DNA of 64,000 nt, taken from NCBI GenBank assembly GCA_010909165.1, contig VJWM01000025.1:3162001-3226000 (forward strand). Direction: 5' to 3'. The translations under genes were made by a program, and so were the position numbers. Source of the DNA: Anthoceros angustus. Its lineage: Eukaryota > Plantae > Anthocerotophyta. Below, in pieces: positions 15,331-63,600 of the stretch; within the stretch, counting starts at the first letter, position 1, and each line of letters begins with the position of its first letter. Under the pieces are notes generated by a model. The model saw only the letters and a program-made list of their open reading frames with translations. It was not told the origin of the DNA and did no database searches.

Positions 15331-15756
15331 AATGCAAAAAACATAGCATCTTCAGCTCCAGCTCTGGTGGTAAGTAGGCCCTTATTAAGGGCTCTTCCTT
15401 ATCTGGGATTAATAGGCCCTTTAATAGGCCCGCTCTTCCTCCTTCCATGGGACTTCCATGCCTACATATTTATAAAGTCTCCGTATTTATTTTATGTGAT
15501 TGATTTTGATATTATCATAAGTGGTTATAATGATCGAGTGGGGAAGGGTTTAGGCCCTAGGGTTTAGTTTATTAGGGAAGAAGCAGGTACTGTTTGGGGT
15601 GGAGGAGTGCTGTTGAGGAATCGCAATTCGCGAGCGCCGGGCAAGCATCCTGCGGGATCGGTTGTCGCCTAAACATGTTGGCTGGATTTGTACAGGTTTG
15701 GTCGTGCAATCGTGTTGAAGTTGCTGGCCTCGACTGATACGGCAACAGGCGTCGCC

Positions 15757-17778
15757 ATGCTGGCTCTTAAGAACCAGCTGCGGTGTTTGACCTATCCACC
15801 AGATCTTGCTGGGGAGCTCCCTCTATATGTAGCCTCTAACTCCCTCCCAATTCAGGCTGCTTGCTTTGAGCCAGCTGGCGTCGCCTTCCATGCTGCCGCG
15901 CTCCGGCTACTGGGATTGGACAAGTCGGATGGCGACAGTGAGGAGGATGTGGTCTCTGACAAGAAGGAGAAGACCTCGTCTCCATCCGTGGACTCCTACC
16001 AGTCCAAGGGGAAGAAGAAGTCCGGGTCAGCGGGTGATCAGCAGGACCACTATGCTCTCCTGGGCCTAGCTCATCTCCGGTTCCTGGCTACTGAGGAGCA
16101 AATCAGGAAAGCTTACAGGGAAACTGCCCTGAAGCATCATCCTGATAAGCAGGCTGCCCTGCTCTTGACTGAGGAGACAGAGGAGGGGAAGGAAGCCAAG
16201 AAGGAGGAGATTGATAAGCATTTTAAGTCCATTCAAGAGGCCTATGAGGTTCTCATTGACCCTACCAAGCGCAGGGTGTATGATTCTATTGATGAGTTTG
16301 ACGACGAGATTCCTGAGGACTGCGCTCCGGAGGATTTTTTCAAGGTTTATTCACCTGTGTTTATGAGGAATGGCCGGTGGTCAGTTGTACAGCCGGTCCC
16401 TCCTCTGGGAGAGGACAACATGTCCATGCAGGAGGTTGATGCTTTCTACGATTTCTGGTGGGGTTTCAAAAGTTGGCGGGAGTTCCCCCATGCGGATGAG
16501 TTTGATCTTGAGCAAGCGGAGAATCGGGAGCATAAGAGATGGATGGAGAGGCAGAACTCTAAGCTCCGGGAAAAGGCTAAGAAGGAGGAGAATAGTAGAA
16601 TTAGGGTGATGGTGGAGAATGCTTACAGGAAGGATCCACGAGTTGCGCGAAGGAAGGAACAGGAGAAAGCCGAGAAGCTGCGGAAGAAGCAGGCGAAGGA
16701 TCAAGCTAGGCGGGAGAAGGAAGAGGAAGCAGCTAGGGTTGTAGAAGAGGAGAAGAAGAGGAAAGAGGAGGAAGAGAAGAAGGCAGCTGAAGAAGCGGCG
16801 GCTCTGAAGAAGATTAGGGAGAAGGAGAAAAAGCTGGTGAGGAAAGAGAGAGCTCGGTTGCGCTCTGCTGCTGCTGGATTGGTTGGGCGGAAAGACCTTG
16901 GGGTTTTAGACGATACGATTGAGGACCTCTGCATGAGTTTGGAAATCACTCAACTGAGACAACTTTGTGAAAGGCTGGAAGGGAGCAACAATGTTGCTGA
17001 GCAGGCACATATTCTTCTGGGAAAAGACACCGTTTTTGAAAATGGGGGCACTGTGCACGTGCAGAGCGGGAGTGATAGTGGTGGTGCAGGTGATGTCAAA
17101 CAGGTCCCTGCAATTTCACAATCTCCCAAAGTTTGTGTAGAGAAGAAGGCATCTTCTGTTGCTAATGCTGTCAAAAAGGAAAGGCCTTGGTCCAAGGAAG
17201 AGCTGGATCTTTTGCGTAAGGCTATAGGTAAGTATCCAAAGGGAACGTCACAGCGATGGGAGGTGGTTTCTACCTACCTAGGAACTGGACGATCAGCAGA
17301 GGAGATCACTAGGGCTGTGAAGACTCGCTTACTGCAGAAGCCAGACTCTTCAAAAGCGTTTGATTCATTTTTGTCGAATCGGAAGACTTCAGGTGTTGCC
17401 ATTGATTCGCCACTCTCTACCAGGGATGACGTTGTCAAGGAGACTTCTCCCAACGTGGTACCTGTGAAAGAAAGTGAGACGACAAGAGGTGGGACTGCCA
17501 AGAAAGATGTCAAAGTAGTTGAGAATGGTGTCGCCAAGAGTGCAGCTAATGGGAACAGCTTAGTAGAGGTGTCCGAAAAGGGCAATAGTGGTGTGGCAGA
17601 CCATGACGGATGGTCGGAGGCTCAGACTCATGCTCTTGTCGTGGCCGCTAAGAATTTCCCCAAGGGTACTGATCGGAGGTGGGAGAAAATTGCTGCAGAG
17701 GTCCCTGGAAAGACCAAGGCAGAGTGCATGAAGAAGTATTCTGAGTTGAGGGATATGTACAAGAAGGCAACAGCTTAA
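15757..17778 (+). CDS. ZRF1: Zuotin-related factor / DNAJC2 (J domain + ZHD + two SANT/Myb domains), copy A, intronless
   Basis: QQDHYALLGLAHLRFLATEEQIRKAYRETALKHHPDK, FYDFWWGFKSWREF, KRWMERQN, SANT motifs WSKEELDLLRKAIGKYPKGTSQRW and WSEAQTHAL..FPKGTDRRWEKIA. ATG at 15757 in GCCATG context. Confidence 0.97.
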   Translation: MLALKNQLRCLTYPPDLAGELPLYVASNSLPIQAACFEPAGVAFHAAALRLLGLDKSDGDSEEDVVSDKKEKTSSPSVDSYQSKGKKKSGSAGDQQDHYALLGLAHLRFLATEEQIRKAYRETALKHHPDKQAALLLTEETEEGKEAKKEEIDKHFKSIQEAYEVLIDPTKRRVYDSIDEFDDEIPEDCAPEDFFKVYSPVFMRNGRWSVVQPVPPLGEDNMSMQEVDAFYDFWWGFKSWREFPHADEFDLEQAENREHKRWMERQNSKLREKAKKEENSRIRVMVENAYRKDPRVARRKEQEKAEKLRKKQAKDQARREKEEEAARVVEEEKKRKEEEEKKAAEEAAALKKIREKEKKLVRKERARLRSAAAGLVGRKDLGVLDDTIEDLCMSLEITQLRQLCERLEGSNNVAEQAHILLGKDTVFENGGTVHVQSGSDSGGAGDVKQVPAISQSPKVCVEKKASSVANAVKKERPWSKEELDLLRKAIGKYPKGTSQRWEVVSTYLGTGRSAEEITRAVKTRLLQKPDSSKAFDSFLSNRKTSGVAIDSPLSTRDDVVKETSPNVVPVKESETTRGGTAKKDVKVVENGVAKSAANGNSLVEVSEKGNSGVADHDGWSEAQTHALVVAAKNFPKGTDRRWEKIAAEVPGKTKAECMKKYSELRDMYKKATA

Positions 17779-18903: not shown

Positions 18904-20949
18904 ATGAAACAATTTTTGCTTCCGAATCTTCACAACTCCTTGGAAGCCTTACCCTCTGTTGTGGCTAGTAATTGCTGGCCAGTAAGATCTTCAAAATATG
19001 AGCCAGCTGGGTTAGCATTTCATTCAATTGCTTGTCGGCTGTTAGGTGTATATCATGAAAACTCTGAGTTAGAGAATTCAGCCTCGGGAAGAAAAGATTC
19101 TACTCATAATACATGTGATCAGTCAAAAGGAAGGAAAAAAGTTTCTCTTAAAGGTGATCAACAAGATCATTATGCACTTTTGGGTATAGGGCATTTGAGA
19201 TTTCTTGCCACCGAAGAGCAAATTAGAAAAGCATATAGAGAATGTGCTTTGAAATATCATCCAGATAAACAATCTTCTTTGATACTACGTGAAAAGACTG
19301 AAGAAGCTAGGAAGACTAAAAAAGAGGAGATTGATCAATATTTTAAGGCTATCCAAGAAGCATATGAGGTCTTGATCGACCCTTGCAAAAGACGAGTTTA
19401 TGACTCAAGCGATGAGTTTGATGATGAGATTCCGACACACTGTTCTTCCAAGGACTTTTTTAATGTATTTGGTCCCGTATTTATTCGTAATGGAAAGTGG
19501 TCAATTACCCAGCCTGTTCCAATTCTTGGCGAAGAGGACACATCTATGGAAGAGGTTGATCGTTTTTACAATTTTTGGTACTCTTTCAAAAGCTGGAGAG
19601 AATTTCCGCATGTAGATGAGTTTGATATTGAAGAAGCAGAAGGTAGAGAACACAAACGGTGGATGGAGCGGCAAAATGCAAAGCTTCGAGAAAAAGCTAA
19701 GAAGGAGGAAACAATAAGAGTAAGAGCATTAGTCGACATAGCTTATAAGAAGGACCCACGAGTCTTAAAGAGAAAAGAAGAAGAAAAAAATGAGAAGCTA
19801 CAAAAAAAAAGACTTCGGGAAGACATTCGGCGAGTGAAAGAGCAGGAGACAGCTAGGGCCATAGAGCAAGAGAGGAAAGAAAAAGAAGATTTAGAGAAAA
19901 AAAACCTTGAAGAAGCTCATTTAATACGAAGATTAAAAGAAAAAGAGAAAAAATTACTTCGAAAAGAGAGATCCAGATTTCGAACAATCATATCTAGTGT
20001 TGCTTCGCAACAAAATGGCTTAGAAATATGTGATGATTTGATAGAGACAATTTGTAGAACATCACAAATGTCCCAACTCAAATTTATAAATGATGAGCTA
20101 GAACAATGCAAACAATATGAAGAACAATTACAAATCTTGCAAAAAATATCAAATGATAAAATTCCAACTATTGTGGAAGCAAAACATTCAGAAGATTTAG
20201 AGCACAATGAGAACGATAATTGTGCTAAGACAACAAACTATACAAGCAATGTTGATGTAGGGAAGTCATGTACATCCTCCAAAGAAGTAAAACATCAAGA
20301 TACTGAACAAACAAGCTGGACTGCAGAAGAAATAATCTTATTACGAAAAGCGATTACCAAATATCCTAAAGGAACATCACAACGTTGGGATGTAATTTCT
20401 CAATATATAGGAACAAAACGTCCTGTAGAAGATATACTCAGAGTAGTCAAAACAATCTTAATGCAAAAACCTTGCACCTCCAAAGTGTATGATTCTTTTT
20501 TGGAAAAGAGGAAAAATACAAGTGTGATAATTAACTCTCCTCTTTCTACAAGAGACGCAAGCAATATAGAGACATGGATTTCTAAAGATGATATTTTTAA
20601 TAATAAGACAGCTAGCCCACTAAATAGTGAGCTAAGAGGTCTTGTAAACAAACAATCAGCCATGACCACCAATCCAGAATTAAGCGGTCAACACATTACA
20701 AAATCAGGTGCTATGCATGCAACAATTTCATCGGAAAGTTTGAATATTTGTAATGAAGATCTTTGGTCCGAGGCTGAGCAATTAACGCTTATTAAAGCTT
20801 TAAAACTTTTTCCAAAAGATACCGAACAAAGATGGGAAAAAATTGCGGAAACAATTCCAGAAAAGTCAAAAGTACAATGCTTTAAAAAATTTGCTCAATT
20901 AAGAGAAAATTTTAAACTGAAAAACAAGCAAAACAATGAACAATCTTAG
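18904..20949 (+). CDS. ZRF1: Zuotin-related factor / DNAJC2, copy B, intronless, AT-rich
   Basis: Uninterrupted 681-aa ORF collinear with copy A: QQDHYALLGIGHLRFLATEEQIRKAY..YHPDK, FYNFWYSFKSWREF, WTAEEIILLRKAITKYPKGTSQRW, WSEAEQLTLIKALKLFPKDTEQRWEKIA. Confidence 0.93.
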   Translation: MKQFLLPNLHNSLEALPSVVASNCWPVRSSKYEPAGLAFHSIACRLLGVYHENSELENSASGRKDSTHNTCDQSKGRKKVSLKGDQQDHYALLGIGHLRFLATEEQIRKAYRECALKYHPDKQSSLILREKTEEARKTKKEEIDQYFKAIQEAYEVLIDPCKRRVYDSSDEFDDEIPTHCSSKDFFNVFGPVFIRNGKWSITQPVPILGEEDTSMEEVDRFYNFWYSFKSWREFPHVDEFDIEEAEGREHKRWMERQNAKLREKAKKEETIRVRALVDIAYKKDPRVLKRKEEEKNEKLQKKRLREDIRRVKEQETARAIEQERKEKEDLEKKNLEEAHLIRRLKEKEKKLLRKERSRFRTIISSVASQQNGLEICDDLIETICRTSQMSQLKFINDELEQCKQYEEQLQILQKISNDKIPTIVEAKHSEDLEHNENDNCAKTTNYTSNVDVGKSCTSSKEVKHQDTEQTSWTAEEIILLRKAITKYPKGTSQRWDVISQYIGTKRPVEDILRVVKTILMQKPCTSKVYDSFLEKRKNTSVIINSPLSTRDASNIETWISKDDIFNNKTASPLNSELRGLVNKQSAMTTNPELSGQHITKSGAMHATISSESLNICNEDLWSEAEQLTLIKALKLFPKDTEQRWEKIAETIPEKSKVQCFKKFAQLRENFKLKNKQNNEQS

Positions 20950-45899: not shown

Positions 45900-47480
45900 T
45901 CAGCTGATACTATCCAAATCGCATCTGCAAAGGATGGTGCTGGTGAAGAGCTTCTTGAAAGGCTGATGCTTGGACTTGGGTACCCGCGTGGAGCCCTTCT
46001 TCCTCCTGCGTCCTCTGCTCTTGCTTCTTCCATCAGATTGCTGCTTGTCAGTAACTTGCTTCTCCGCCAATGAGTCAGAAGCATCTGCCGGGCTTTGCTG
46101 GGAGAGAGGTTCCTCCATGCTGAAATCCTCATGTCCCGAGCTGCTGCCGCCTTTCATGGCATTACGCTTGGAGCTGTTAGATGTGGGCGAGGATACCAAG
46201 CCCTTGGACTTCCTGATGCCAGCAAGCTCCGGTGACTCCTGTTCCCGGAGGCTCTGGTGCATGCTGGTTCCGGAAATGCTCACCTCCTTGGATATGATAA
46301 CTTCCTTGGCCAATACCACATCCTTCATCGTCACGCTCTCATAGTGTGTGCTTTCTTCCTGGACCACATACATGTGACTTTTGGACGAGACAATGCCATA
46401 CTTGAGAGATATCTCCGCAAACTCTGAAGCTACCTTGAGGTTTTCGTCCGCGTACAGGTTCAGGTTGGGCAAGCAAGGTATCACAGGAGACGCGGGGTTT
46501 GAAGGCTGCTTGCTGGATGCCTTCCCCTCTGGGGGAGAATTCAATCTCGATGCCTTCCCCTCTGACACTCGTGGAGAAATGCTCGAGACGCCGGGAGAAG
46601 CATCCTCGCGCAAGCTGACATCCGCACCGGCTTCAACCGCCGGAGAATGCGTCTCTGCATCGTTCACCTCGGGACTCACTTTTCCAGATCTCTGCGGGCT
46701 GCTGCCGCGGGGCAGCATCTTCCCTGCTGCCGGGGACGCGATCTTGGCATCCTTGGGATCATCCGTGCAGACAACGCTCACAAGCCGGCCGCTCTCCTTC
46801 TCCAATGTGAAGAATCTCGTGCTTTTGCCGGAGGGAGACACCTTGATATCCCGATACTCGTCTTTCCGGAGCTCATCCAGCACCAGCGCCTCCTCCTTGG
46901 TCACAAACTGGTACGATCCGCTCATATTCCTGGCGCGCCTCCCGCTCCTCTTCCCGCCGTTCAGCGTGCCTAGGGCTCCGTCCTTGTCCGCCCCTGCTCC
47001 CTCTTCCACCATCCCTTCCTTGCTGAAAAGCTGCTTGAGCGATCCATGACTCTGCTTCATCAGCTGCAACAGGGAGCTCGAGGTCCTCCCCGCCTTGGAC
47101 CTCAGAGGAGCCTGCTCGAACGGCGCAGTCCTGGCTGCGCCACAAACCTCCTCAGCAGGGCCAGCACTTCCAGAGCCAGCCGATGACAGATTTGGTCGGG
47201 ACGAGCCGGAATCAGGCTCGCGCTGAGGAGATTGCGCGGAATTGTAGAGCGGATTGCTCACCAGCTGCGGGCCTGCTGCTGCAGCATTCCCCGGCGCAGG
47301 AGCAGGTCTCCCTGCACCGAACTTGAAGCTGTCGCCGCTCCCGAAGACCTTCCCCGGCACGAAGGTGCGGTGCAGGGAGCGCTTCAACTTCTCCTTCTGG
47401 ATGAGCTTCAGCAGCTGGTGCCGGAAGAGCACTTCCTCATCCGTGAGCGACCTGCCGCCGATCACCAGCCTTACCACCAT
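45900..47480 (-). CDS. Hypothetical 526-aa single-exon protein, largely low-complexity with a C-terminal basic NLS-like tract
   Basis: Long uninterrupted ATG ORF with GC-rich third positions like neighbouring genes; no family recognised. Confidence 0.7.
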   Translation of the reverse strand: MVVRLVIGGRSLTDEEVLFRHQLLKLIQKEKLKRSLHRTFVPGKVFGSGDSFKFGAGRPAPAPGNAAAAGPQLVSNPLYNSAQSPQREPDSGSSRPNLSSAGSGSAGPAEEVCGAARTAPFEQAPLRSKAGRTSSSLLQLMKQSHGSLKQLFSKEGMVEEGAGADKDGALGTLNGGKRSGRRARNMSGSYQFVTKEEALVLDELRKDEYRDIKVSPSGKSTRFFTLEKESGRLVSVVCTDDPKDAKIASPAAGKMLPRGSSPQRSGKVSPEVNDAETHSPAVEAGADVSLREDASPGVSSISPRVSEGKASRLNSPPEGKASSKQPSNPASPVIPCLPNLNLYADENLKVASEFAEISLKYGIVSSKSHMYVVQEESTHYESVTMKDVVLAKEVIISKEVSISGTSMHQSLREQESPELAGIRKSKGLVSSPTSNSSKRNAMKGGSSSGHEDFSMEEPLSQQSPADASDSLAEKQVTDKQQSDGRSKSRGRRRKKGSTRVPKSKHQPFKKLFTSTILCRCDLDSIS

Positions 47481-48369
47481 TTTTGCGGCTGCAATCTCCG
47501 CTCACACCAAATGCTTATCCATCCAGACCGCCTGCTGCTGCTGGAGGCAGAGCCGACGGAGACACACAAATATGAGCATTGGGAGCCTAGAGCTCCTCTC
47601 AACCGGTTGGGTGCGCCCAATTTCTAAATCCATGGCATTGCGGAGGGCCGGCTGAGCACTGAGCAATCGGCGGGCGGCAACGCAATTACGCGAAGCGTGG
47701 GCCTGATGGTGCGACCCGTTGCAGCGTGTGCGAGGAATCTTTGTGCTCATCGCTCCCGAGAGTCGAGACAGGTGGAGCCACGAGCATTTACGAGGTTTTT
47801 CGCGCCACCTCTAACGCTCCGCCGTGACCCAATCACACGAATGATCTACGACTGTGTTGCTGCTATTTTATTTTAATGTTTTTCTTTTTTCCACGTCCTT
47901 TCAGAGCTTATAGCGACCGGCTTCCATGTTTGAGCACCCCTTAGTCCTGCGTCTTTTTTTTTTTTGGCGAACCGTCTTTCCACACAGCCGTCAGCATACC
48001 TAGTGGGCCGGCTTGAAATTAGTTAATAATTATAGTGTGTTAGTTCAGTATATATGAAGATTTTTATTAAAATTATATGTATATCTCATACCAATGTATC
48101 TTGTCAAGCTCCATTTTCAAGGTCAAGGATTGGTTTCTCGGTATTCCTACATATTTAGTAGTTTGTACCTATATAGTTTTACATTGAAGCTTTACTTCCT
48201 CAAGCTTTGATTTATTATCATTTGATCATGTATATATATATATCATAATTATATCATTGGTTTGTCGTATGTTTTTGGTTTATATTTGGTACTTAAATAT
48301 GTAAAGTATATATGAACTTGATACATATGTGGGCATATAGAAAAATAAGGTCTTAATTACCTTCGTGCC

Positions 48370-48560
48370 CAGACATCTCCTAGACAGTGGAGCAACCGAG
48401 CACATGTCTTCTAGGAGGGATTGGTACTTCCTTGCTCGCTCTACAACCTATCTACATGGGAGATAGTTCTCTACATGTGGACGTTGGTGAAGGAGTGGTA
48501 ATGGTGCAACTCCAAAATCATGTTGCCTTCATGAAGGCAACATGATTGCACTAACTCATA
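48370..48560 (+). mobile_element. Ty1/copia protease fragment
   Basis: LDSGATEHMSSRRDW...IYMGDSS..GEGVVMVQL across a frameshift. Confidence 0.65.
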
Positions 48561-48739
48561 CTTATTTTCAGGGTTGGGTAGGTTTTATTCATGTTATTGT
48601 GTTTTTCAGACTCACGGTGTTCCCCTGAGTAAGTGTTACTTTTGCCACAACCCGCGTAGGTGAACCTTTGATGGTGAGTACATAGCCAGTTGAGGTAAAT
48701 AGCAAATCACAACAATGCAGTAGCATTAATTGACTAACT

Positions 48740-49896
48740 GAATTAAGTGCTTGGCCATTGCAAGTACATACAGCACATGGAGTTTAAGCAAAGTATTATC
48801 AATCGGTTGGAATGAACACGTACCAGTACGAAGGAGAAATTAAGTGCTTGGCCATTGCAAGTACATACAGCACATGGTCGAGTTTAAGCAAAGTATTATC
48901 AACCAGTTGGAATGAACACGTACCAGTACCAAGGATCATCAAACCAGTGTGAGAATGCTCATCACCTAACACACTCTTTCAGAATGGCCAAGCACATACA
49001 GCACATGGTCGAGTTTAAGCAAAATATTATCAACCAGCTGGAATGAACACGTACCAGTACCGAGGATCATCAAACCAGTGTGAGAATGCTCATCACCTAA
49101 CGCACTCTTTCAGCTGTACTTGAAGGTATGAAGTTACTCATCAATGATTTGTCCTTGCAAATGTGGGATGTGGCTCCGGCATCCACGTACCAACTATCAG
49201 GAGCATGTGAGGAGGTGGAGAGACACACCGTCATAATCATGAGTTGCTTGCTGGAAACATCGGCATGTTGAGGCCGTTTCTTGGTGACGGAGTTAACATC
49301 AACATGCTTGGAGGTCTTCTCGGCTTTCCTCGGCTCACCAGATTTCTTTTTTCGGCATTCCCTTTCCCAATGCCCTTGCAGCCCACACCAGTTGCAAGTG
49401 CTAGATCTTTTGGTCTGTCCTGGTTTGGAAAGACCACTACCAGGGGAGTTTCTATTCCCATTCTACGATTTGCCTTTTGATGTATAGAGAGAGTACTTTA
49501 TCTGTCTTAGTGCATCATGATCCATGATTGGATGAACTGGCATGACTTTTCTCCTCTTGAAATAAAGCACCAACAACATTTGTAAATCTAATAGTGGTTG
49601 GTTTACCTGCAGCTACAGCATTACCAGCATCCCGGAGGGTGGCTCCATAGCTGGAGACAAAAGGCTAGAAACTAGAAGGCAGGCTAGTTAGGAGTTGAGC
49701 AACAGCATCCAATTCACTCATGGTGGACCCTAAGGAGATGAGTTGTGCACGGTCACGGACCGCCAAGGAAAGTCGCAGCCCTTCTCGCCACAAGATCCAG
49801 GGAGAAGAGTTCCTGACAGACATAGAGTGAGAATGTTCTTCACCTCGTTTGTCTACGCAAGTTGTGTCCATATCTCCTCCGCTTTATTCAGGTAAG
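48740..49896 (-). mobile_element. Ty1/copia gag-protease remnant, cut at 49896/49897 by the macro-array
   Basis: Minus strand: LGSTMSELDAVAQLLTSLPSSF (UBN2-type gag), CNWCGLQGHWERECRKK (CCHC), SWYVDAGATSHIC (protease), LGD...GTGTCSFQLVDN.LLKLDHVLYV repeated three times. Confidence 0.85.
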
Positions 49897-52800
49897 TGTC
49901 ATGCCGTGTGATACTAATCTCTGCACTTGGGTTTAGTGTTTGATTGGCATTAATTAATCTAACTACTTATCTTTAAGTAAGTAATTAGTGTTATTTAATC
50001 TAACTACATATCTTTTACTAAGTAATTAGTGTTAATTAATCTAATTACTTATCTTTAAGTAAGTAATTAATGTTAATTAATCTAATTACTTATCTTTAAG
50101 TAAGTAATTAATTTTAATTAATCTAATTACTTATCTTTAAGTAAGTAATTAGTGTTAATTAATCTAAGATGCTTATGTTAATTAAGCATTGATTAGTGTT
50201 AATTAATCTAAGATGCTTAATTAAGCATTAGCATGTTAATTAAACATGGTTAGCAATAGCTAAGTGGATAAGCTCAAGTAATATGCTTTGGCATATTCCT
50301 TGCATATATAGTGTATTCTTACCATACAATAGCTAAGTGGATAAGCTCAAGTAATATGCTTTGCATATTCCTCGATATAGTGTATTCTTAGGATATTTCT
50401 TGCATGCCGATGCCAATATGATATCTTAAGAATACGTCACGTGGTCTAGTATATAGACCCTTCCATCGAGGACAATGGATCAAACATTGTCCTCCAGAGC
50501 AATGCAACGAACAGAGGCCAGTGGGAGCGACTGAGGAAGTGTGAATTGTGTGTTGGTTTGCCACGACGTGCAAGCTACTCCCTCCGTCATAAGCCTGATG
50601 ACACAGACGTAGATAGGCCGTGCTAGGCTTTGTGATGCTAGGCGATGCTAGGCCGCGAATAGAGAGGAGGCAAAGAAGCCCAAGTTCAAGGCCAAGAGGA
50701 GGCTAAAAAGCCCAAGTCCAAGGCCAAGGAGGAATGAGGCCTCCACAAGGAGGGATGGCCTTTAAGGCTAACCAACCAAGGGAGAAACAAGAGTATTTTA
50801 CTCTTGGATCAAATGGATAAGGTAAAGTGGATAGGCTTGGGTATGTTATCGGCATTGATTTCACTCTCGTCCAAAACTCTCATTAGCTAGCACCCCATCC
50901 TAATCGATCCATCTCATGGGTGCTTAACTTTGGAGTTCTTATGTCCTTGCTATCTAACTCACCGGCTTTAAGGCCAACCAACCAAGGGAGAAACAAGAGT
51001 ATTTTACTCTTGGGCCCTGGATTCCAAGGATAAGGGTAAAGTGGATAGGCATGGGTTATCGTAACCAACCAAGGGAGAAACAAGAGTATTTTACTCTTGG
51101 CCCCGATTCCAAGGATAAGGGTAAAGTGGATAGCATGGGTATGTTATCGCAGTTGATTTCACTTTCTCATTCAAAACTCATTAGCTAGCACCCCATCCGG
51201 GTACTAATCCATCTCACGGGTGCTTAACTATGGAGTTCTTGTGTCCTTGCTATCTAACTCACCCATCTAACTCGCATGTCGAGCTTGTCAGCTTTAATGA
51301 TAGGAGATTCATAGCGGGTAAGCTTAACTCCCACAGCTCCTAGAGTAGAAGTAGGATGGGCCTGTGCCATGTCAAACTTGTAAAAATCTTAGCAATATAT
51401 TTATGTTGATGAATAATTAGCAGACCTTCATATCTGACTCGTAAGATCTGGATGCTTAGACAGAATTGCACGTCCCCACTATTTGTCATCTCAAAAGGCT
51501 GACGTAACATACCCTTCACATGATATCGATATGAAGCGCTCGTGCCATGCTTGCGCCCGACATTAATGACCGGCCATATAATGGCGCCCAGCGCCCGACA
51601 TTGGCCCCCAACGCCTGACATTGACTTGCCATACAATGGCGCCTAGCGCCAAATAATAATGGCATCTCATTAACGCCCAACTATAGTGCCCAGTTAACGC
51701 CCAACTATCGCGCCCAAATAACGCTCAACAATGGCGTTCAACGCCCAGCTATGGCGCCCAATTATCGCCCAACAAAGGCCCCCAATTAATGCCCAATAAT
51801 GGCGCCCAATGCCCAAATATGGCGCCCAATGCCCAAATATGGCGCCCAAGGCCCAACTATGGCGCCCAATGCCCAACTATGGCGCCCAACGTCCGACAAT
51901 GGCTGGCCATCCACTGGCACCCAACGCCCTACACTGGCTGGCCATACAATGACGCCCAACGCCCGACAATGGTTGGCCATCCAATGGCGCCCAACGCCCG
52001 ACAATGGTTGGCCATCCAATGGCGCCCAACGCCCTACAATGGCTGGCCATACAATGGCGCCCAACGCCCGACAATGGCTGGCCATCCAATGGCGCCCAAC
52101 GCCCTACAATGGCTGGGCATACAATGGCGCTAACGCCCTACAATGGTCGGGTTACAATGGCGGCCCAACGCCTGACAATCGTGGCCACCGCCAATAGCTC
52201 CCCGCCGCCACCCTCCCTCCCCACCTACAAAACAACGCGACAATGGCTAACCACACAATGGCGGCTCGACAATCGCCACCCCGCCAATGGTTGGCCATAC
52301 AATAGGGCCCAACGCCCGACAATGGCTGGCCTGATAATGGCTGGCCCGACAATCGCTGGCCAGCCTGCCAATGGCTCCCCGCCTGCCACCCTCCCCCCCA
52401 CCAAAAACTCTCCCTCCATCCCCCTTCCCAATGGCGTCCAATGCCCGACAATGGTTGGCCATACAATGGCGCCCAACGCCCGACAATGGCTGGCCCGGCA
52501 ATCGCTGGCTAGCATGCCAATGGCTCCCCGCCTCCTCCCCGCCTGCCACCCCTCCCCCCCACCAAAAACTCTTACTCCATCCCCCTTCCTACCCACTTCC
52601 CCCTCCCCTCCCTCCCGCACCCCTTCCCCCGCCAAATTTTAAGAAAAAGGCTTTACAACATAATCCTACAACAAGGGAGCCACGTCATCGCATGCAACGG
52701 TAAATGGCTTCCAATCATATTTTTGTGATTAGTGATATTAATAAAGATTTTTAGAAAAAAAAGATCAAATTTTGAAAAAAAGGCTTTACAACGTAATCTA

Positions 52801-55800
52801 CAACGAAGCTACGCCATTGATCATTGTTGTAAATGAGCACCCAAAAGAGTGCCATATCATCCAACTAGAAACCCGCATTGTAAACCGAGTCTTAAAACTT
52901 GCCACATCAGCGAAACTTAAACCAATTTACAACGGAGGTTTTAGACGTTGTAAAGATTGGGACATTTACAAAAGGGGTTTTGTAAAACCCCTCCTCCCCG
53001 CCTGCCACCCCTCGCCCCTACCACCCTCCATCCCCCTTCCCAATGGCGCCCAACGCCCGACAATGGCTAGCTATACAATGGTTGGCGACACCGCCACCGC
53101 CAATGGCTCCCCGCCGCCACCCTCCCGACCGCCACCTCCTCCCACCAAAACTCTCCTCCATCCCCTTCCCAATGGCGCCCAACGCCCGAGAATGGCTGGC
53201 TATAACGCCCAACGCCCGACAATGGCGCCCGATAATGGTCGCCCGACACCGCTAAGCGTGCGGTAATGGCTCGCCCGCCACCCTCCTCCCGCCACCTCCC
53301 CACCAAAACTCTCCCTCCATCCTCCTTCCCAATGGCGCCTAACGCCGACACAATGGCTAAACAATGGCGGCCCGACAATGGCGGCCCGACAATGGTCGCC
53401 CGACAATGGCTGGCCGGACAATGGTCGGTCGGCCGACAATCAATGACTTGACCGACAATGGTCACCTAACAATGGTCGGCCCGACAATGGTCGGCCGACA
53501 ATGGCCGGGTCGGCCGACAATCAATGACTTGACCGACAATGGCTGGCCAATGGCTTGGCCCGACAATGGCCGGGCCGTCAATGGTCGGGTGGACAATGGT
53601 TGGCCCGACAATGGTCGGTGCCGCCAATGGTCTTTCGACAATGGCTGGCCCGACAATGGTCGCCCGACAATGGTGGCCCGACAATGCCCGGCCCGACAAT
53701 GGCTGGCCATACAATGGCTCCCAACGCCCGACAATGGTGGCCCAATAATGGTGGCGACAATCACTGCCACCGCCAATGGCTCCCCGCCTCCCGCTTCCTC
53801 CCCGCCTCCTCCTCCTCCTCCCCGCCACCCTCCCCACCAAAAACTCTCCTCCATCCCCTTCCCAATGGCGCCCAACGCGACAATGGTTGGCTATACAATG
53901 GCGCCCAACGCCCGATAATCGCTGGCCCGACAATGGTCGCCCGACAATCCGGGTTAGCGTGCCAATGGCTCCCCGCCGCCACCCTCCCGCCGCCACCTCC
54001 CCACCAAAACTCTCCCTCCATCCTCCTTCCCAATGGCGCCTAACGCCGACAATGGTGGACAATGGTCATCGGCACTGGGCAATGGCGGCCCGACAATGGC
54101 GCCCGACAATGGCGGTCGGCACAATCAATGACTTGACGAGCCGACAATGGCTGGCCCGACAATGGTCATTTGACAATGGCCGGGTCCGACAATCAATGAC
54201 TTGCGACAATGGCTTTGGCCTACAATGGTTGGCCGACAATGGCCGGCCCGACACAATGGTGGGTGGACAATGGTTGGCCCGACAATGGTCGGTGGCCGAC
54301 AATGGTGGCTCGACAATGGCTGGCCCGACAATGGTCGCCCGACAATGGTGGCCCGACAATGCTGCCCGACAATGGCGCCATACAATGGCTCTAACGCCGA
54401 CAATGGTGGCCCAATAATGGTGGCCCGACAATGCCACGCCAATGGCTCCCCGCCTCCCGCTTCCTCCCCGCCTCCTCCTCCTCCTTGCCTGCCACCCCTC
54501 CCCCCCACCAAAAACTCTCCCTCCATCCCCCTTCCCAATGGCGTCCAACGCGCGACAATGGTTGGCCATACAATGGCGCCCAACGCCCGACAATGGTTGG
54601 CCTGATAATGGCTGGCCCGACAATCGTTGGCCAGCCTGCCAATGGCTCCCCGCCTCCTCCCCGGCTGCCACCGCTCCCCCCCACCAAAAACTCTCCCTCC
54701 ATCCCCCTTCCCAATGGCGTCCAGCGCCCGACAATGGTTGGCCCTACAATGGCGCCCAACGCCCGACAATGGCTGGCCCGAAAATGGCTTTTCCGACAAT
54801 CACCTGGCCAGCCGCCAATGGCTCCTCGCCACCCTCCCCACCAAAAACTCTCCTCCATCCCCTTCCCAATGGCGTCCAACGCGACAATGGTTGGCCATAC
54901 AATGGCGCCCAACGCCCGACAATGGTTGGCTGATAATGGCTGGCCCGACAATCTGGCCAGCCTCCCAATGGCTCGCCTCCTCCGCCACCGCTCCCCACCA
55001 AAAACTCTCCTCCATCCCCTTCCCAATGGCGTCCAGCCGACAATGGTTGGCCCTACAATGGCGCCTAACGACAATGGCTGGCCCGAAAATGGCTTTTCCG
55101 ACAATGGCCGGCCAATGGCTCGACAATGGCTCGCCACCCTCCCCACCAAAAACTCTCCCTCCATCCCCTTCCCAATGGCGTCCGATGCGGACAATGGTTG
55201 GCTATACAATGGCGCCTAACGCCTGACAATGGCTGGCGACAATGCTGGCCCGATAATCGCTGGCCAGCCGCCAATGGCTCCCCGCCGCCACCCTCCCGCC
55301 GCCACCTCCCCATCAAAAATTCTCCTCCATCCCCTTCCCAATGGCGCGCCCACCGCCCAACAATGGTTATTATACAATGGCGCCTAACGCCCGACAATGG
55401 CTGGCCCGAAAATGTCGCCCGACAATCGCCGGCCGTATCAATGGGTCCTCGCCACCCGTCCCCCACCAAAAACTCTCCTTGGCGACATTCCAGGAAGATT
55501 GGTTTTGTGCACAATGCACTACATGAGGTGATTGGTTTTGTGCACAATGCACTACATGAGGTGCGCAGTATGTAGTCCTACTAATGATAATGTTTTGACT
55601 TGCGCCTCACATTATCGGGATTTGTTTGCACCTATATATCTCACAGTATTAGATTTGTTTGCTTGGTTGTTGGTAAGTGCTTATATGAATTCTTACTGCG
55701 TATGACGCTTGTCATGCCGTGTGATACTAATCTCGCACGGTTTAGTGTTTGATTGGCATTAATTAATCTAACTACATATCTTTTAGTAAGTAATTAGTGT

Positions 55801-58800
55801 TAATTAATCTAATTACTTATCTTTAAGTAAGTAATTAGTGTTAATTAATCTAACTACATATCTTTTAGTAAGTAATTAATGTTAATTAATCTAATTACTT
55901 ATCTTTAAGTAAGTAATTAGTGTTAATTAATCTAATTACTTATCTTTAAGTAAGTAATTAATGTTAATTAATCTAAGATGCTTATGTTAATTAAGCATTT
56001 ATTAGTGTTAATTAAACATGGTTAGCAATAGCTAAGTGGATAAGCTCAAGTAACTGCTTTGGCATATTCCTTGCATATTATAATGTATTCTTAGGATATT
56101 TCTTGCATGCCGATGCGATATGATATCTTAAGAATATGCCGATGCCAACGCTGATAGCCATACAATGGCGCCTAACGTGAAAAATGGCGTCTGAGAATGG
56201 ATGGCCCGACAATGGCGACAATGGCTCGCCCGCCACCCCCCGCCCGCCACTCCTCCCCCACCAAAACTCTCCCTCCATCCCCTTCCCAATAGCGCCCAAC
56301 GCCCGACAATGGCTGGCCATACAATGGCGCCTAACGCCCCACAATGGCTGGCCCGACAATCGCTGGCCAGCCTCCCAATGGCTCCCCGCCTGCCACCCCT
56401 TCCCCCGCCACTCCTCCCTCCACCAAAAACTCTCCCTCCATCCCCCTTCCCAAAGGCGTCCAACGCCCGACAATGGTTGGCCATACAATAGGGCCCAACG
56501 CCCGACAATGGCTGGCCTGATAATGGCTGGCCCGACAATCGGCCGGCCCCGCCAATGGCTCCCCGCCCGCCACCCTCCCGCCCGCCACTCCTCCCTCCCA
56601 CCAAAACTCTCCCTCCATCCCCCTTCCCAATGGCGCCAATGCCCGACAATGGTTGGCACAATGGCGAACGCGACAATGGCTAGCCCGGCAATGGCTAGCA
56701 TGCCAATGGCTCCCCGCCTCCCCGCCCGCCACCCTCCCCCACCAAAACTCTTACTCCATCCCCTTCCTACCCACTTCCCCTCCCTCCCTCCCGCACCCCT
56801 TCCCAAATTTTAAGAAAAGGCTTTACAACATAATCTACAACAAGGGAGCCACGTCATCGCATGCAACGGTAAATGGCTTCCAATCATATTTTGTGATTAG
56901 TGATATTAATAAAGATTTTATAAAAAGATCAAATTTTAAAAAAGGCTTTACAACGTAATCTACGAAGGAGCTACTTCATTGATCATTGTTGTAAATGAGC
57001 ACCAAAAGAGTGCCATATCATCCAACTAGAAACCCGCATTATAAACGAAGTCTTAAAACTTGCCACATCAAACTTAAACCAATTTACAACGGAGGTTTTA
57101 GGCGTTGTAAAGATTGAATATTTACAAAGGGTTTTGTAAAACCCTCCTCCCCCGCCACCCCTCGCCCCTACCACCTCCATCCTCCTTCCCAATGGCGTAG
57201 CCCGACAATGGCTCCCCGCCTCCTCCCGCCTGCCACCTCCCCACCAAAACTCTTACTCCATCCCCTTCCTACCCACTTCCCCTCCCTCCTCCCGCACCCC
57301 TTCCGCCAAATTTTAAGAAAAGGCTTTACAACATAATCCTACAACAAGGGAGCCACGTCATCGCATGCAACGGTAAATGGCTTCCAATCATATTTTGTGA
57401 CTAGTGATATTAATAAAGATTTTATAAAAAGATCAAATTTTAAAAAAGGCTTTACAACGTAATCTACAACGAAGGAGCTACTTCATTGATCGTTGTTGTA
57501 AATGAGCACCCAAAAGTGCCATATCATCCAACTAGAAACCGCATTGTAAAACCGAGTCTTAAAACTTGCCACATCAGTGAAACTTAAACCAATTTACGGA
57601 GGTTTTAGGCGTTGTAAAGATTGGAACATTTACAAAGGGGTTTTGTAAAACCCTCCTCCCGCCACCCCCCGCCTACCACCTCCATCCCCCTTCCCAAAGG
57701 CGCCCAACCCCGACAATGGCTAGCCATACAATGGCTGGCCTGACAATCGCTGGCCAGCCTGCCAATGGCTCCCCGCTTGCCACCTCCTACCCGCCTGCAA
57801 CCCTCCCCCCCACCAAAAACTCTCCCTCCATCCCCCTTCCGAATGGCATCCAACGCCCGACAATGGTTGGCCATACAATGGCGCCCAACGCCCGACAACG
57901 GTTGGCCCGATAACGGCTGGCGACAATCACTGCCACGGCAATGCCTCCCCGCCACCCTCCCCCGCCACTCCTCCTCCCACCAAAACTCTCCCTCCATGCA
58001 GTTCCCAATGGCGCCCAACGTCCGACAATGGATATACAATGGCGCCTAACGCCCACAATGGCGAAAATGGTGGCCCGACAATCGGCCACCTATCAATGGG
58101 TCCTGCTCGCCACCCCTCCTCCCCACCAAAACTCTCCTCCATCCTCTTCCAATGGCGCCCAACGCCCGACAATGGATGGCCATACAATGGCGCCCAACGC
58201 CCGAAATGGCGGCGACAATGGCTGGCCCGACAATCAATCAGCCACCTACCAATGGCTCCCCGCCCGCCACCCTCCTACCGCCACTCCTCCTCCCACCAAA
58301 ACTCTCCTCCATCCCCTTCCCAATGGCGCCCAACGCCCGAGAATGGCGGCTATACAATGGCGCCCAACGCCCGACAATGGCCGGCCGATAATGGCTCCCG
58401 CCACCGCCAATGGCGAAATGGCTGGCGAAAATGGCTCCCGCCACCCTCCCGCCCGCCACCTCCTCCCCACCAAAACTCTCCTCCATCCTCCTTCCCAATG
58501 GCGCCTAGCCGACAATGGCGGCCATACAATGGCGCCCAGCCGACAATGGCGTCCGACAATCGTTGGCCCGACAATGGCCGGCCGACAATGGTCGACAATG
58601 GTTGGCGACAATGGTCCGGCTCGACAATGACTTGCGACAATGGCTGACAATGGTTGGCCGACAATGGTGGCCGACAATGGCGCCAATGGCAATGGATAAT
58701 GGCTCGACAATGGTCGGCCGCCTTCTACCGCCAATGGCTCGGGTTTTGACAATGGCCCGACAATCCGGGCCCGACAATGGCGCCCGACAATGGTCAACCC

Positions 58801-60278
58801 CGACAATGCTGGCTATACAATGGCGCCAACGCCCGACAATGGTTGGCGATAATGGTGGCCAATGGGTGGCCCGACACCGCCGCCACCGCCAATGGCTCCC
58901 GCCTCCCGCCTTCCTCCCGCCTCCTCCCGCCTCCTCCTCCTCCTCCCGCCACCTCCCCCACCAAAACTCTCCTCCATCCCCTTCCCAATGGCGCCCAATG
59001 CCCGACAATGGTTGGCCATACAATGGCGCCCAACGCCCGACAATGGCTGGCCGAAATGGCTTTTCCGACAATGGCCGGCCGCCACCTCCTCCCGCCACCC
59101 TCCCCACCAAAACTCTCCTCCATCCCCTTCCCAATGGCGTCCGATGCCCGACAATGGTTGGCCATACAATGGCGTAGCGACAATGGTGGCGATAGTGGCT
59201 GGCCCGATAATCGTCGGCCGACAATGGTGGCCCGATAATGGCTCCCCGCCACCCTCCCCGCGCCACTCCTCCCCACCAAAATTCTCCTCCATCCCCCTTG
59301 TCGTCACCGCCCAACAATGGTTGGCCATACAATGGCCTTGACAATGGCTGGCCGAAAATGTCGGGCCCAGGCAATCGTGGCCGGGTATCAATGGGTCCTC
59401 GCGTGCCACCGTCCCCCACCAAAACTCTGTGACATTCCAGGAAGATTGGTTTTGTGCACAATGCACTACATGAGGTGCGACGTATATAGTCCTACTAATG
59501 ATAATGTTTTGACTTGCACCACACATGGGGGGGGGATTTGTTCAAGCACCTATATATCGTATTAGATTTGTTTGCTTGGTTGTTGGTCGAGGAAGTGCTT
59601 ATATGAATTCAAGTGCTTACCTCGTGCGACAGTTGTCATGCCGTGTGATACTAATCTCTGCACTTGGGTTTAGTGTTTGATTGACATTAATTAATCTAAC
59701 TACATATCTTTTAGTAAGTAATTAGTGTTAATTAATCTAATTACTTATCTTTAAGTAAGTAATTAGTGTTAATTATTCTAACTACATATCTTTTAGTAAG
59801 TAATTAATGTTAATTAATCTAATTACTTATCTTTAAGTAAGTAATTAGTGTTAATTAATCTAATTACTTATCTTTAAGTAAGTAATTAATGTTAATTAAT
59901 CTAAGATGCTTATCTTTAAGTAAGTAATTAATGTTAATTAATATAATTACTTATCTTTAAGTAAGTAATTAGTGTTAATTAATCTAATTACTTATCTTTA
60001 AGTAAGTAATTAATGTTAATTAATCTAAGATGCTTATGTTAATTAAGCATTTATTAGTGTTAATTAAACATGGTTAGCAATAGCTAAGTGGATAAGCTCA
60101 AGTAATATCCTTGCATATTCCTTGCATATTATAGTGTATTCTTAGGATATTTCTTGCATACACGATGCTAATATGATATCTTAAGAATATGCCGATGCTA
60201 ACGCTCGACAATGGTCAGCCATACAATGGCGCCCAACGCTCAAAAATGGCTGGCCCGATAATGGATGGCCCGACAATC
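49897..60278. repeat. Hierarchical macro-tandem array: units 49897-55709, 55710-59633, 59634-60278 (interrupted)
   Basis: tgtcatgccgtgtgatactaatc starts each unit. Each has a 41-bp AT array, GC-rich 35/15-bp arrays with C-rich tracts, a TTTACAAC block (52632-52991, 56803-57143, 57307-57655; not reached in the truncated unit 3), and a ~200-bp linker (55488-55709, 59435-59633). Confidence 0.92.
51310..51550 (-). mobile_element. Ty1/copia reverse transcriptase fragment within a 1.1-kb insert in array unit 1
   Basis: VKGMLRQPFEMTNSGDVQFCLSIQILRVRYEGLLIIHQHKYIAKIF resembles the copia RT FEMKDLG..K.iLGIQI.R....i.l.Q.KY motif. Confidence 0.7.
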
Positions 60279-60614
60279 TGTCGCAAGCCACGATCAAGAC
60301 TGTGATCTTGGAAGCGAATGAGCCTGGAACAAGTGTTGATCTTTGCATCATGTGTACATATAGGGGTCCCGTCTAGTGACAAGAATGTATTCCTAACTAA
60401 TACGGTTGAAACTAAACTACGGCTATTTACTTATCTTGGTTTACCCACGGGTGATTATCCTTATATGGCCTATTACAACGTTTGTCGTGTCCGTGCTTGG
60501 AGATCCGTCTCCCGCTCGGACAAAAGAGGGGTGTCCAAGCCGCCTCGCCCATGGACTTAGCCGGTCCGGCCCACGGCCCGCTTACCGAGGGTTCCGAGTG
60601 GTCACTCCGTGACA
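60279..60614 (-). repeat. 3' LTR (336 bp, TGTCAC...GCGACA on minus strand) preceded by a polypurine tract
   Basis: Minus strand gtggggagaa (60624-60615) directly before TGTCAC; TG..CA ends; the left end abuts the satellite at 60278. Confidence 0.85.
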
Positions 60615-63600
60615 TTCTCCCCACTTAGCGAGGGCTGGTCCTCCACCTTGGAGCCGCGGCCGGAGCGGAACTGCTGACACCAAAGTGAGGGGTTCCCAAG
60701 TAGCTAGGGCGGCTCGCTTGGACCAACCTACCAAGCAAGAGGGCGTAAGCTTACGATATCTAACCCGGAGGATGCTTGGGTCCACATGTGGCCGGATCGG
60801 GTGTCGTGCCGGGACGACGGATCTGCGGCTAGGGTGGCGGCCGGAAGAGCTAGGGACCGCCGAGTGGGTGCGGGTGAGTGAAGGACGCCTGAGTCCGATC
60901 CAGAGTGGCCGGTGAGTTGGTGGAGGCCGTGTTGAGTCGCGGGCCTGACCGAGGGTATCCGACCGATCCGTGTTGGGTCTTGGCAGAGGGAGCTCGGGTG
61001 ACGATCGGCTTGAGCATCGATACGTGGAAGGTCTTGCAGATCTTCCAGTCTGCGGGAAGGGCGAGCTGGTATGCCACCGGATTGATCTGCTTGGTGATCT
61101 CAAAGGGTCCAGTAAATCGGTAGGTGAGCTTCCCCTTGGGCTGGATGGGTGAGGGATACCGGTGAGGGCGCATACGAAGCCATACCTTCTGCCCAACTGT
61201 GTAAGTCACTTCCCTGCGGTGTTTGTTGACGACTTGCACGATCCTGCGGGATAGTTTCTTGCGGCTTGTCAACCTCATGATACACGCCCTGGGCCGCCAT
61301 GCTACCGGCCCATTTGTCCGGCAGAGGGCCGGAGGCCGAGGTGGCGGCATGATCCATAAAGAAGCTTGAGGGCGCCACCCGAGTCGCGTGCTTTGAGGTG
61401 TTGTATGCATACTCGAGCAAAGGTAACATAATTTCCCAGTTGCCTTGTTTCTCATGGGTGAAGTGTCTGAGCATGTCTTCGAGTACTTGGTTCTGTTTTT
61501 CAGTTTGCCCATTTGATTCCGGATGGCAAGCTGATGATAAGTTCTGACTGATGCCGAGGGACTCTGTGAAGCATTTCCAGAATCCAGCTGTGAACTTGGT
61601 GTCTCGGTCGGAGACAATCAAGGAATACCATGCACCCGAATATTTCAGGAATACTGCTAACTTGGGTGCCGTGGATCGGTTTGGGGGATGAAATGGCTGT
61701 CTTGGAGAGTCGGTCCATGACGACCCGAGCGTCTGCTCTTCCCGACTGGTCCGGCGGTGAGTAATGAAATCCATGGAGATGGATTCGAACCTACCTGTGG
61801 GGATTGGTAGTGGAGCAACTTGCCCGGGCGATTGATCGCCTTGGCCTGCTGAGGAGGTACAAGACCGCACCCGCTTGATGGCGCCGAGGCCATCCCAATA
61901 AAATGTTCCTTAACGCGGGCGTATGTCTTATCCACGCCGAGATGTCCCGCTGTGGGACTGTGGAGATCATGTAGGATTGCTTTCTTGATGTCGGTGGCTG
62001 CGAAGGGATGACCAAGCGCCCCTTCTTATACGTGCAAGCATCCTTGATTGTGTACTTGCATGAGCCGGGTGACTGCCCGCACATCGAGAGTAATTGGTAC
62101 ACTCACCGAGGGCACCGCCCCTGGAGAGCTTCCTGCACGGCGGATGGTGTCCACCGCGTTGTCATGAGAGTGCACGCCCGCTACCGAGGGCATCGAACGA
62201 CGCTCGAGGGGCCCGCAACATAGCGGATGTAAGTTGAAATCAAAGGTATTCTCGCCCGCGTGCATTCAAGTCATCATCAAGAAATGTTGAAGTGAATGAT
62301 GGTTGTGGCATGTGAAGTGGCCGGTGTAGTGCCTCGAGTTTCGGTCGTGGACGATCGCGAACATTTCTTTATCGTGAATCGCGTAGTTCACCGTGCCCTT
62401 GCCTTCTTTGATTCATATGCGATAACCCGCCATCTTGGAGAGAACGCCCAATGGCGTAGCCGCCGGCATCTGTGTATCACATAAGGTGAGTGCGGGTTGG
62501 CCACGGGGCACGGGGCAGGGAGGGTCAGGCTCTTGAGTTTGAGGAAGGCCTGCTGTCTGCCCCGACCTAGTTGTAATTCCTTGGATGCGGCGGAGGGCAT
62601 CTGCCGAGGGAGCGCAATCTTCTTTGAAGTCCTTGCGAACCTCCGTAGAATCAAATGCCATACCTAGGAACCCACGGAGTGGAGATCTCGGGCGCCACGG
62701 AGATTGCCCGAATCTTCGGTATCCACTGATGCCGCCGATTATATGACCGAGGTATTCGACTGTTCGAAAAACACACACTTGCTTTGGCGAATAGCTTGTG
62801 TTCGAGTGTCTCAAATACTTGTCGACCAACTTGTAGTGGCCGGGTGGTCGGATGTGGATGAGTATGTCGTCCAGAAAAACTTCAACGCCATGGCCGAGAA
62901 GGGGGCGGAGGAGTTCCTGCATTAGACATTGAAAGGTGGCGGGCGCGTTTATGAGGCCGAACGGCATGACCACAAACTCGAAGTGTCCGTGTCGAGTTCT
63001 GAAAGCTGTCTTGTACTTGTCCCCTGCTCGGATGCGGATCTGATGGAAGCCTGAGCGTAAGTCAATCTTTGTGAAGTATTTTGCTCCATGCAGTTGATCC
63101 AGTATCTCATCCACCCGGGGCATCTGATATACATTTCTGACTGTGGCTCGATTGAGGCCCCTGTAATCGATGCAGAGGCGCCAACCGCCATCGGGCTTTC
63201 CCACCAGAAGGACTGGAGCGCCAAAAGGTGAGACTGAAGCTCTGACGAACCCCTGTTGGAGGAACTCGTCAACTTGCCATTTTATCTCTTCATTTTCCCC
63301 TGCGGATGTCCTGTAGGGCGGGATACTAACAGGTTTGTGGCCAGGGATCAGCTCGATGGCGTGATCTATGGCCTGCGTGTGGCGCCTGTGGCACGGCGAA
63401 GAGATCAAAGATACTCGCAGCAGCCTTCATCTGTAGGGCATCCTCGCCTTGTGCCTTGGCCGCACGGACTCGGGGTGCCTCCAAAGGTAAGACTTTCTTT
63501 AGTCTTGCTACGATGTGAAGTCACAGGGCTTTATTTAGAGCGAGATCGCAACAGTGTTTGTCAAGACGCATTTGTCTCGACATGACGTCCGGCGCCGGCC

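Follow-up and report, generated by a model that had tools for sequence, protein, structure and literature searches.

Retrotransposons with three long terminal repeats (LTRs), called "tandem" retrotransposons, originate through unequal recombination or through template switching, and the described cases of these elements and of the non-coding derivatives of the large retrotransposon derivative (LARD) type are flanked by target-site duplications (TSDs) and carry a primer-binding site (PBS) as well as a polypurine tract (PPT). Multi-kilobase plant macrosatellites with nested sub-repeats, such as Sobo of Solanum bulbocastanum, are composed of kilobase-scale non-coding units, are partly derived from LTRs, and form arrays of many units. 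We analyzed a stretch of 64,000 nucleotides from Anthoceros angustus (Anthocerotophyta; assembly GCA_010909165.1, contig VJWM01000025.1, positions 3,162,001 to 3,226,000 of the forward strand; hereafter the window) and found at positions 49897 to 60278 a tandem array of large satellite-rich units, which begins inside the gag region of a degraded copia element and is interrupted by a gypsy element. This array is comparable to three-LTR and LARD-type elements in its LTR-interior-LTR-interior-LTR layout, as we read it, and in its large non-coding interior; with Sobo-type macrosatellites it has in common kilobase-scale non-coding units that contain sub-repeats. Sobo-type macrosatellites form long arrays, whereas here little more than two units are visible and the junction with the copia gag is sharp. 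Arrays of terminal-repeat retrotransposons in miniature (TRIMs) of the Cassandra type likewise consist of LTR-interior copies placed head to tail, with neighboring copies sharing one LTR, and are non-autonomous elements that encode no protein (Kalendar et al. 2020, PMC7215508). Cassandra has short LTRs with 5S-derived RNA polymerase III promoters, whereas the Anthoceros array has units of 4-6 kb in two or more copies, with no 5S or transfer RNA (tRNA) signal and no PPT. Ogre/Tat elements (Vondrak et al. 2020, PMC7004042) and the POL-3'LTR region of Retand (PMC11963269) also contain family-specific tandem repeats in a non-coding interior that expand to longer arrays. These elements have gag-pol genes or autonomous partners and a defined PBS, PPT and TSD, whereas neither coding sequence nor a PPT was seen in the array studied here, and Retand has been reported from angiosperms, not from bryophytes. 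On balance, we tentatively regard the array as the remains of a non-autonomous element of the LTR-retrotransposon type with LTRs of the size of the unit head, which is the likeliest of the readings considered and still far from assured.

The array is a true duplication structure and no chance pattern. Exactly three plus-strand copies of the sequence TGTCATGCCGTG are present in the window, starting at 49897, 55710 and 59634, with none on the minus strand, and the first 25 bases of the three units are identical. Alignment of the unit starts showed that similarity opens precisely at TGTCATG, and that the bases 5' of this motif in unit 1 are unrelated to those in units 2 and 3. Units 2 and 3 are preceded by a common linker, the start of which, TTCCAGGAAGATTGG, is found at only two positions of the window (55488 and 59435); the two linkers, 222 bp and 199 bp long, align with a substitution identity of about 89%, and only the first carries a perfect 33-bp tandem duplication (55497-55563). 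Its TATCGGG is replaced by nine consecutive G in the second linker. The blocks in front of the linkers are 5591 and 3725 bp long and end in GCGACA (55482-55487) and GTGACA (59429-59434), respectively, which gives full units of 5813 bp for unit 1 and 3924 bp for unit 2. Units 1 and 2 are colinear end to end, and at least 2.1 units are seen in the window. Between units, the substitution identity is 87-100% by segment, with very many small gaps. The initial annotation of this region had described a block starting with TGTCATG inside a copia gag, the same start in units 2 and 3 behind a common linker of about 200 bp, block ends in GCGACA and GTGACA, and blocks of 3.7-5.6 kb built from several satellites, and our alignments, the gag frame running up to 49896, the exact motif positions, the block lengths and the tandem arrays detected by Tandem Repeats Finder (TRF) agree with each of these descriptions. 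The repeat at this locus is a composite tandem, non-coding and young, with units of 3.9-5.8 kb, of which two are complete and one is interrupted; its structure is real and lineage-specific. That three starts lie in phase and two units are complete is a pattern common to any tandem array.

The one fixed end of the array is its left end, TGTCATG, and the similarity between the units begins exactly where the copia gag homology ends. The copia fragment is frameshifted, with its domains in the correct order, and showed weak but colinear Pfam matches to Retrotran_gag_2, zf-CCHC and Pol_BBD. Positions 112-137 of the Retrotran_gag_2 profile map to 49668-49745, and the N-terminal side of gag is cut at 49896/7. 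The gag reading frame reaches within a few bases of 49896, indicating that the array begins inside gag. Because the left end is fixed at the copia junction, the unit start is either a true element end or the point at which a pre-existing array was joined at an arbitrary phase; had a single-copy segment been duplicated in place, its boundary would have to meet the copia junction by chance. The copia fragment is truncated at its other side too, near 48360. Its protease region (48741-49113) is tandemly duplicated, with periods of 100 and 131 bp and 93-96% identity.

At the other side, a minus-strand gypsy element interrupts unit 3 at 60278/9. It contains RVT_1 and integrase SH3 domains, and the window ends within it. 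Since this element has a PPT of its own and its LTR ends exactly at 60279, it represents an independent insertion into unit 3, and we used its 3' end as a positive control for LTR ends and PPTs in this assembly. The insertion point lies in the satellite sequence ...GACAATC, in which CAATC is the candidate 5-bp target. We also considered the array as a 3' untranslated region or LTR of this gypsy element and rejected this on account of the gypsy's own PPT and 336-bp LTR; the similarity of that LTR to the array did not exceed that of shuffled controls.

In the partition that we favor, the LTR would be the AT-rich head of each unit, running from TGT to ACA (its length would be 455 bp for unit 2 and 592 bp for unit 3, and that of unit 1 would be extended by a 1.1 kb segment that only this unit has), and the C-rich satellite body together with the 0.2 kb linker would form the interior. 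The heads of units 1 to 3 all end in ...CCATACA, and one base further on the 12-mer TGGCGCC(C/T)AACG is present in three of three units (TGGCGCCTAACG in unit 2, TGGCGCCCAACG in unit 3). This 12-mer includes the entire 11-nt primer site of Drosophila Gypsy, TGGCGCCCAAC, which is primed by tRNA-Lys,2 (PMC1635307), and the same string also appears in the literature on retroviruses, foamy viruses among them. In a survey of plant LTR elements, tRNA-Lys was the primer of 9%, mainly in non-chromovirus gypsy lineages such as Retand (PMC6317226), in which 57% of the elements have tRNA-Lys primers (supplement, PMC6317226). With regard to the 5'-TG...CA-3' termini of LTRs, the units start with TGTCATG, and ...CCATACA of the head or ...GACA of the blocks are the candidate ends. 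A head of 455-592 bp with TGT...ACA ends and a primer site 1 nt further on is ordinary for an LTR, and the LTR of the neighboring gypsy element has the ends TGTCAC...GCGACA. Seen directly in the DNA are the layout of the array, its TG start where copia stops, a motif resembling a PBS and the absence of coding capacity.

If the heads are LTRs, the element would first have inserted into the copia gag, and the tandem with three LTRs may then have arisen by unequal recombination between LTRs or by template switching. The tandem repeats of the interior would have expanded and contracted, with a 35-bp monomer that resembles the junction of LTR end and primer site, and the gypsy element would have inserted into unit 3 at a later step. 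In this course of events, we infer that the element retrotransposed, that its LTRs recombined and how the satellites came about. The tRNA-Lys-like 12-mer is present in every 35-bp monomer; a further-reaching proposal is a mobile non-autonomous LTR-type element that carries kilobase-scale satellites, in its interior or in its LTRs, seeded from its own LTR-end/primer-site junction, which we consider unlikely.

The units are built from nested tandem arrays with periods of 41, 35, 20, 15, about 165-176 and 305 bp, as determined by TRF. The head is AT-rich (0.43-0.56 kb) and contains six to eight copies of a 41-bp hairpin-like repeat, and the body is C-rich and contains about 11-13 copies of a higher-order repeat of about 165 bp, which consists of 15-, 20- and 35-bp sub-repeats around CGACAATGG. 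This motif was found in 85 forward copies and no reverse copy. AT-rich modules of about 0.5 kb are present once in unit 1 and twice in unit 2, and from its sequence such a module looks like a small insert resembling a miniature inverted-repeat transposable element (MITE) that was co-amplified with the unit. At 56800-57125, 57306-57633 and 52632-52969, it has inverted arms of about 25 nt, with about 215 nt between them, as well as a palindrome, GGGTTTTGTAAAACCC. The 1109-bp segment found only in unit 1 (50435-51543) is missing from units 2 and 3 at identical boundaries. A nested transposable element insertion was rejected as its origin, since both TSD and terminal inverted repeats (TIRs) are absent, and a deletion common to units 2 and 3 is more likely. 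The segment opens with ACGTCACGTGG, which is G-box-like, followed by TATATAG, and holds two repeats of about 200 bp. Ten open reading frames (ORFs) from the array matched no Pfam family, indicating that the array has no coding capacity. An Rfam cmscan of 49800-60400 at E<=1 detected neither 5S nor tRNA, its sole match being a weak one to mir-1307 that arose by chance, and no match at gathering level was obtained in the whole window. Cassandra-like 5S cassettes at 50766-51276 thus had no backing from Rfam at E<=1; an origin from a ribosomal DNA spacer was rejected because no ribosomal RNA signal was found by Rfam. The coordinates of all features are listed in Table 1.

Table 1. Positions of the array units, their parts and the flanking elements in the window.
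Feature	Position	Strand	Description
Degraded copia fragment	48360..49896	-	gag, zinc knuckle, protease beta-barrel; from six-frame pieces and Pfam
Unit 1 head	49897..50434	+	TGTCATG start; 41-bp AT-rich hairpin-like satellite at 49950-50211; 73-bp duplicated segment
Unit-1-only segment	50435..51543	+	1109 bp; from alignment and module BLAST
Unit 1 body	51544..55487	+	C-rich satellites with CAATGG core, periods 15/20/35/~165 bp; one AT-rich module of ~0.5 kb (about 52560-53100); ends in GCGACA
PBS-like 12-mer, unit 1	51637-51648	+	
Unit 1 tail ("linker")	55488..55709	+	mostly unique sequence
Unit 2 head, candidate conventional LTR	55710..56164	+	TGTCATG to CCATACA, 455 bp
Unit 2 body	56137..59434	+	~165-bp higher-order satellite copies; two AT-rich modules, 56689-57213 and 57190-57721; ends in GTGACA
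PBS-like 12-mer, unit 2	56166..56177	+	TGGCGCCTAACG; one base past ...ACA
Unit 2 tail ("linker")	59435..59633	+	
Unit 3, interrupted	59634..60278	+	head with 8.3 copies of the 41-bp satellite and first ~90 bp of body
PBS-like 12-mer, unit 3	60227-60238	+	TGGCGCCCAACG
Gypsy 3' LTR	60279..60614	-	336 bp, TGTCAC...GCGACA; interrupts unit 3 at 60278/9
Gypsy polypurine tract	60615-60626	-	80% purine over 15 nt

Several results weigh against the head as an LTR. No PPT was found in front of it: the 15 nt 5' of 55710 and 59634 are 47% purine and their minus-strand equivalents 40%, compared with 80% in the gypsy control. The 12-mer is the core of the 35-bp satellite and occurs 21 times, which means that the site is not unique, and judged by sequence its resemblance to a primer site could be due to chance. 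The match is to the site of Drosophila Gypsy, and the tRNA-Lys 3' end of this plant may differ, and no tRNA genes were found in the window. Since the last 25 nt or so of the head resemble a monomer of the satellite, the LTR would have no sharp end. No match to the array was found elsewhere in the window, metagenome scans with the head terminus and with the conserved linker core gave no match, and a protein-level search with the ORF across the block-end/linker junction detected no relatives. We also examined an element on the minus strand and rejected it, as TGG is missing past the end of the head when this is reverse-complemented, and neither of the two boundaries, read in the same way, is preceded by a PPT.

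Both the retroelement tandem and its main competitor, a macrosatellite, are known kinds of repeat organization. In the latter case, the array would be a piece of a multi-kilobase composite macrosatellite, unrelated to retrotransposition, which became joined to the truncated copia by a deletion, by double-strand-break repair or by re-integration of circular repeat DNA, and the apparent unit start would be the phase of the cut. An array with a period of block plus linker that is cut at an arbitrary point looks identical as long as its right end is unseen, the truncation of copia near 48360 shows that rearrangement junctions are present at the locus, and no PPT, self-priming signal, coding capacity or dispersed copies were found in the window or in the metagenome and protein searches. 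The colinear non-coding units with nested satellites, at least 2.1 in number, would suit a macrosatellite. Few copies are seen, however, and the reading leaves the abrupt junction of TG with copia unexplained. Two coincidences, both noticed post hoc, are also needed: a TGT start exactly at the copia junction, for which a rough estimate is 1/16 to 1/64, and ...ACA followed by a tRNA-Lys-type 12-mer after the head, at about 0.05-0.1. We therefore consider a macrosatellite fragment possible but somewhat doubtful. The initial annotation had drawn the element differently, with the whole blocks of 3.7-5.6 kb as LTRs and the linker of about 200 bp as the interior of a giant TRIM/Cassandra-like tandem element. 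This is compatible with the architecture of the array, and there is a likeness between the block ends (TGTCATG...GGCGACA or ...GTGACA) and the gypsy LTR ends TGTCACG...TTGCGACA, but it covers 5-9 bases only and nothing further exceeds shuffled controls. GACA occupies 1.5-2.1% of the body positions, about 4-5 times what composition would predict, and the blocks end in what look like variants of the satellite (…TGGCGACA-T compared with …TGGCGACAAT of the monomer). Coincidence is therefore the best account of the inverted ends; the annotation itself had allowed for this, and GACA is indeed part of the satellite motif. In agreement with its remark that the linker has no recognizable PBS or PPT, TGG is absent 0-5 nt past the block end, where the first TGG, at +13, demands an implausible tRNA end; no complement of at least 10 nt to the post-LTR region is present inside the block, which argues against Tf1-like priming; and no PPT is present on either strand, the purine content being that given above. 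Self-priming elements have been described in mosses (Neumann et al., PMC6317226). The likeness to Cassandra found no support, with no 5S or tRNA signal in Rfam at E<=1, and the asymmetry between unit 1 and the later units that was taken as a mark of a TRIM/Cassandra-like array is not diagnostic: any tandem array with a period of block plus linker gives the same picture while the right end lies beyond the window (past 64000), and for the same reason the dividing line between LTR and linker is arbitrary and not set by the data. We rejected the giant-LTR partition as PBS, self-priming complement and PPT are all absent, and consider it very improbable; what stands of that interpretation is the head-to-tail layout, the TG start at the copia gag and a possible LTR-type origin.

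The array could also be a product of the assembly, through a mis-join at 49896/7 or through repeats falsely expanded or collapsed in a noisy long-read assembly, and the gap openings between units are very dense, at about 50 per kb. The units, however, differ in structure: the 41-bp repeat is present six times in one and eight times in another, the 1.1 kb segment occurs in unit 1 only, the AT-rich modules number one or two, and the 33-bp duplication is restricted to one linker. These differences favor distinct genomic copies, and an artefact is very improbable. We also considered another class of satellite-carrying mobile element, Helitron/Helentron-like or CACTA-like and arranged head to tail. 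The body motif contains CCGACA, which resembles the subterminal repeats of En/Spm. Satellite-carrying Helentrons are reported from other organisms (PMC7492417). At the junctions, the Helitron pair 5'-TC/CTRR-3', a hairpin and a target between A and T are absent on both strands. All 85 of 85 motif copies run in one orientation, whereas CACTA subterminal repeats run both ways, and no TIR was found. With ends and motif orientation unsuited, both classes were rejected, and we consider such an origin extremely improbable.

Elsewhere in the window, two intact tandem ZRF1/DNAJC2 ORFs lie at 15688-17778 and 18904-20949. The first shows at most 69% identity, to a Logan contig protein, and about 60% to moss and liverwort proteins, and the second about 51% identity to all matches, a lower conservation suggesting that the second copy evolves much faster. 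The identities point to a land plant that lies outside the groups with good sampling. A serine-rich ORF of 526 aa on the minus strand (45900-47480) matched no Pfam family and had no exact match in the protein collection.

If the array is only a macrosatellite fragment, it would be an ordinary feature of a repeat-rich genome. Satellites arising in LTR elements have so far been documented mainly in angiosperms. If the array is instead the tandem remains of an LTR-type element, it would be a bryophyte-grade case of satellites that arose within LTR elements and were dispersed or multiplied together with them, in which the satellite monomer resembles the element's own LTR-end/primer-site junction. 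Should the element in addition have seeded its satellites from that junction while mobile, each insertion would bring a complete satellite array to another site.

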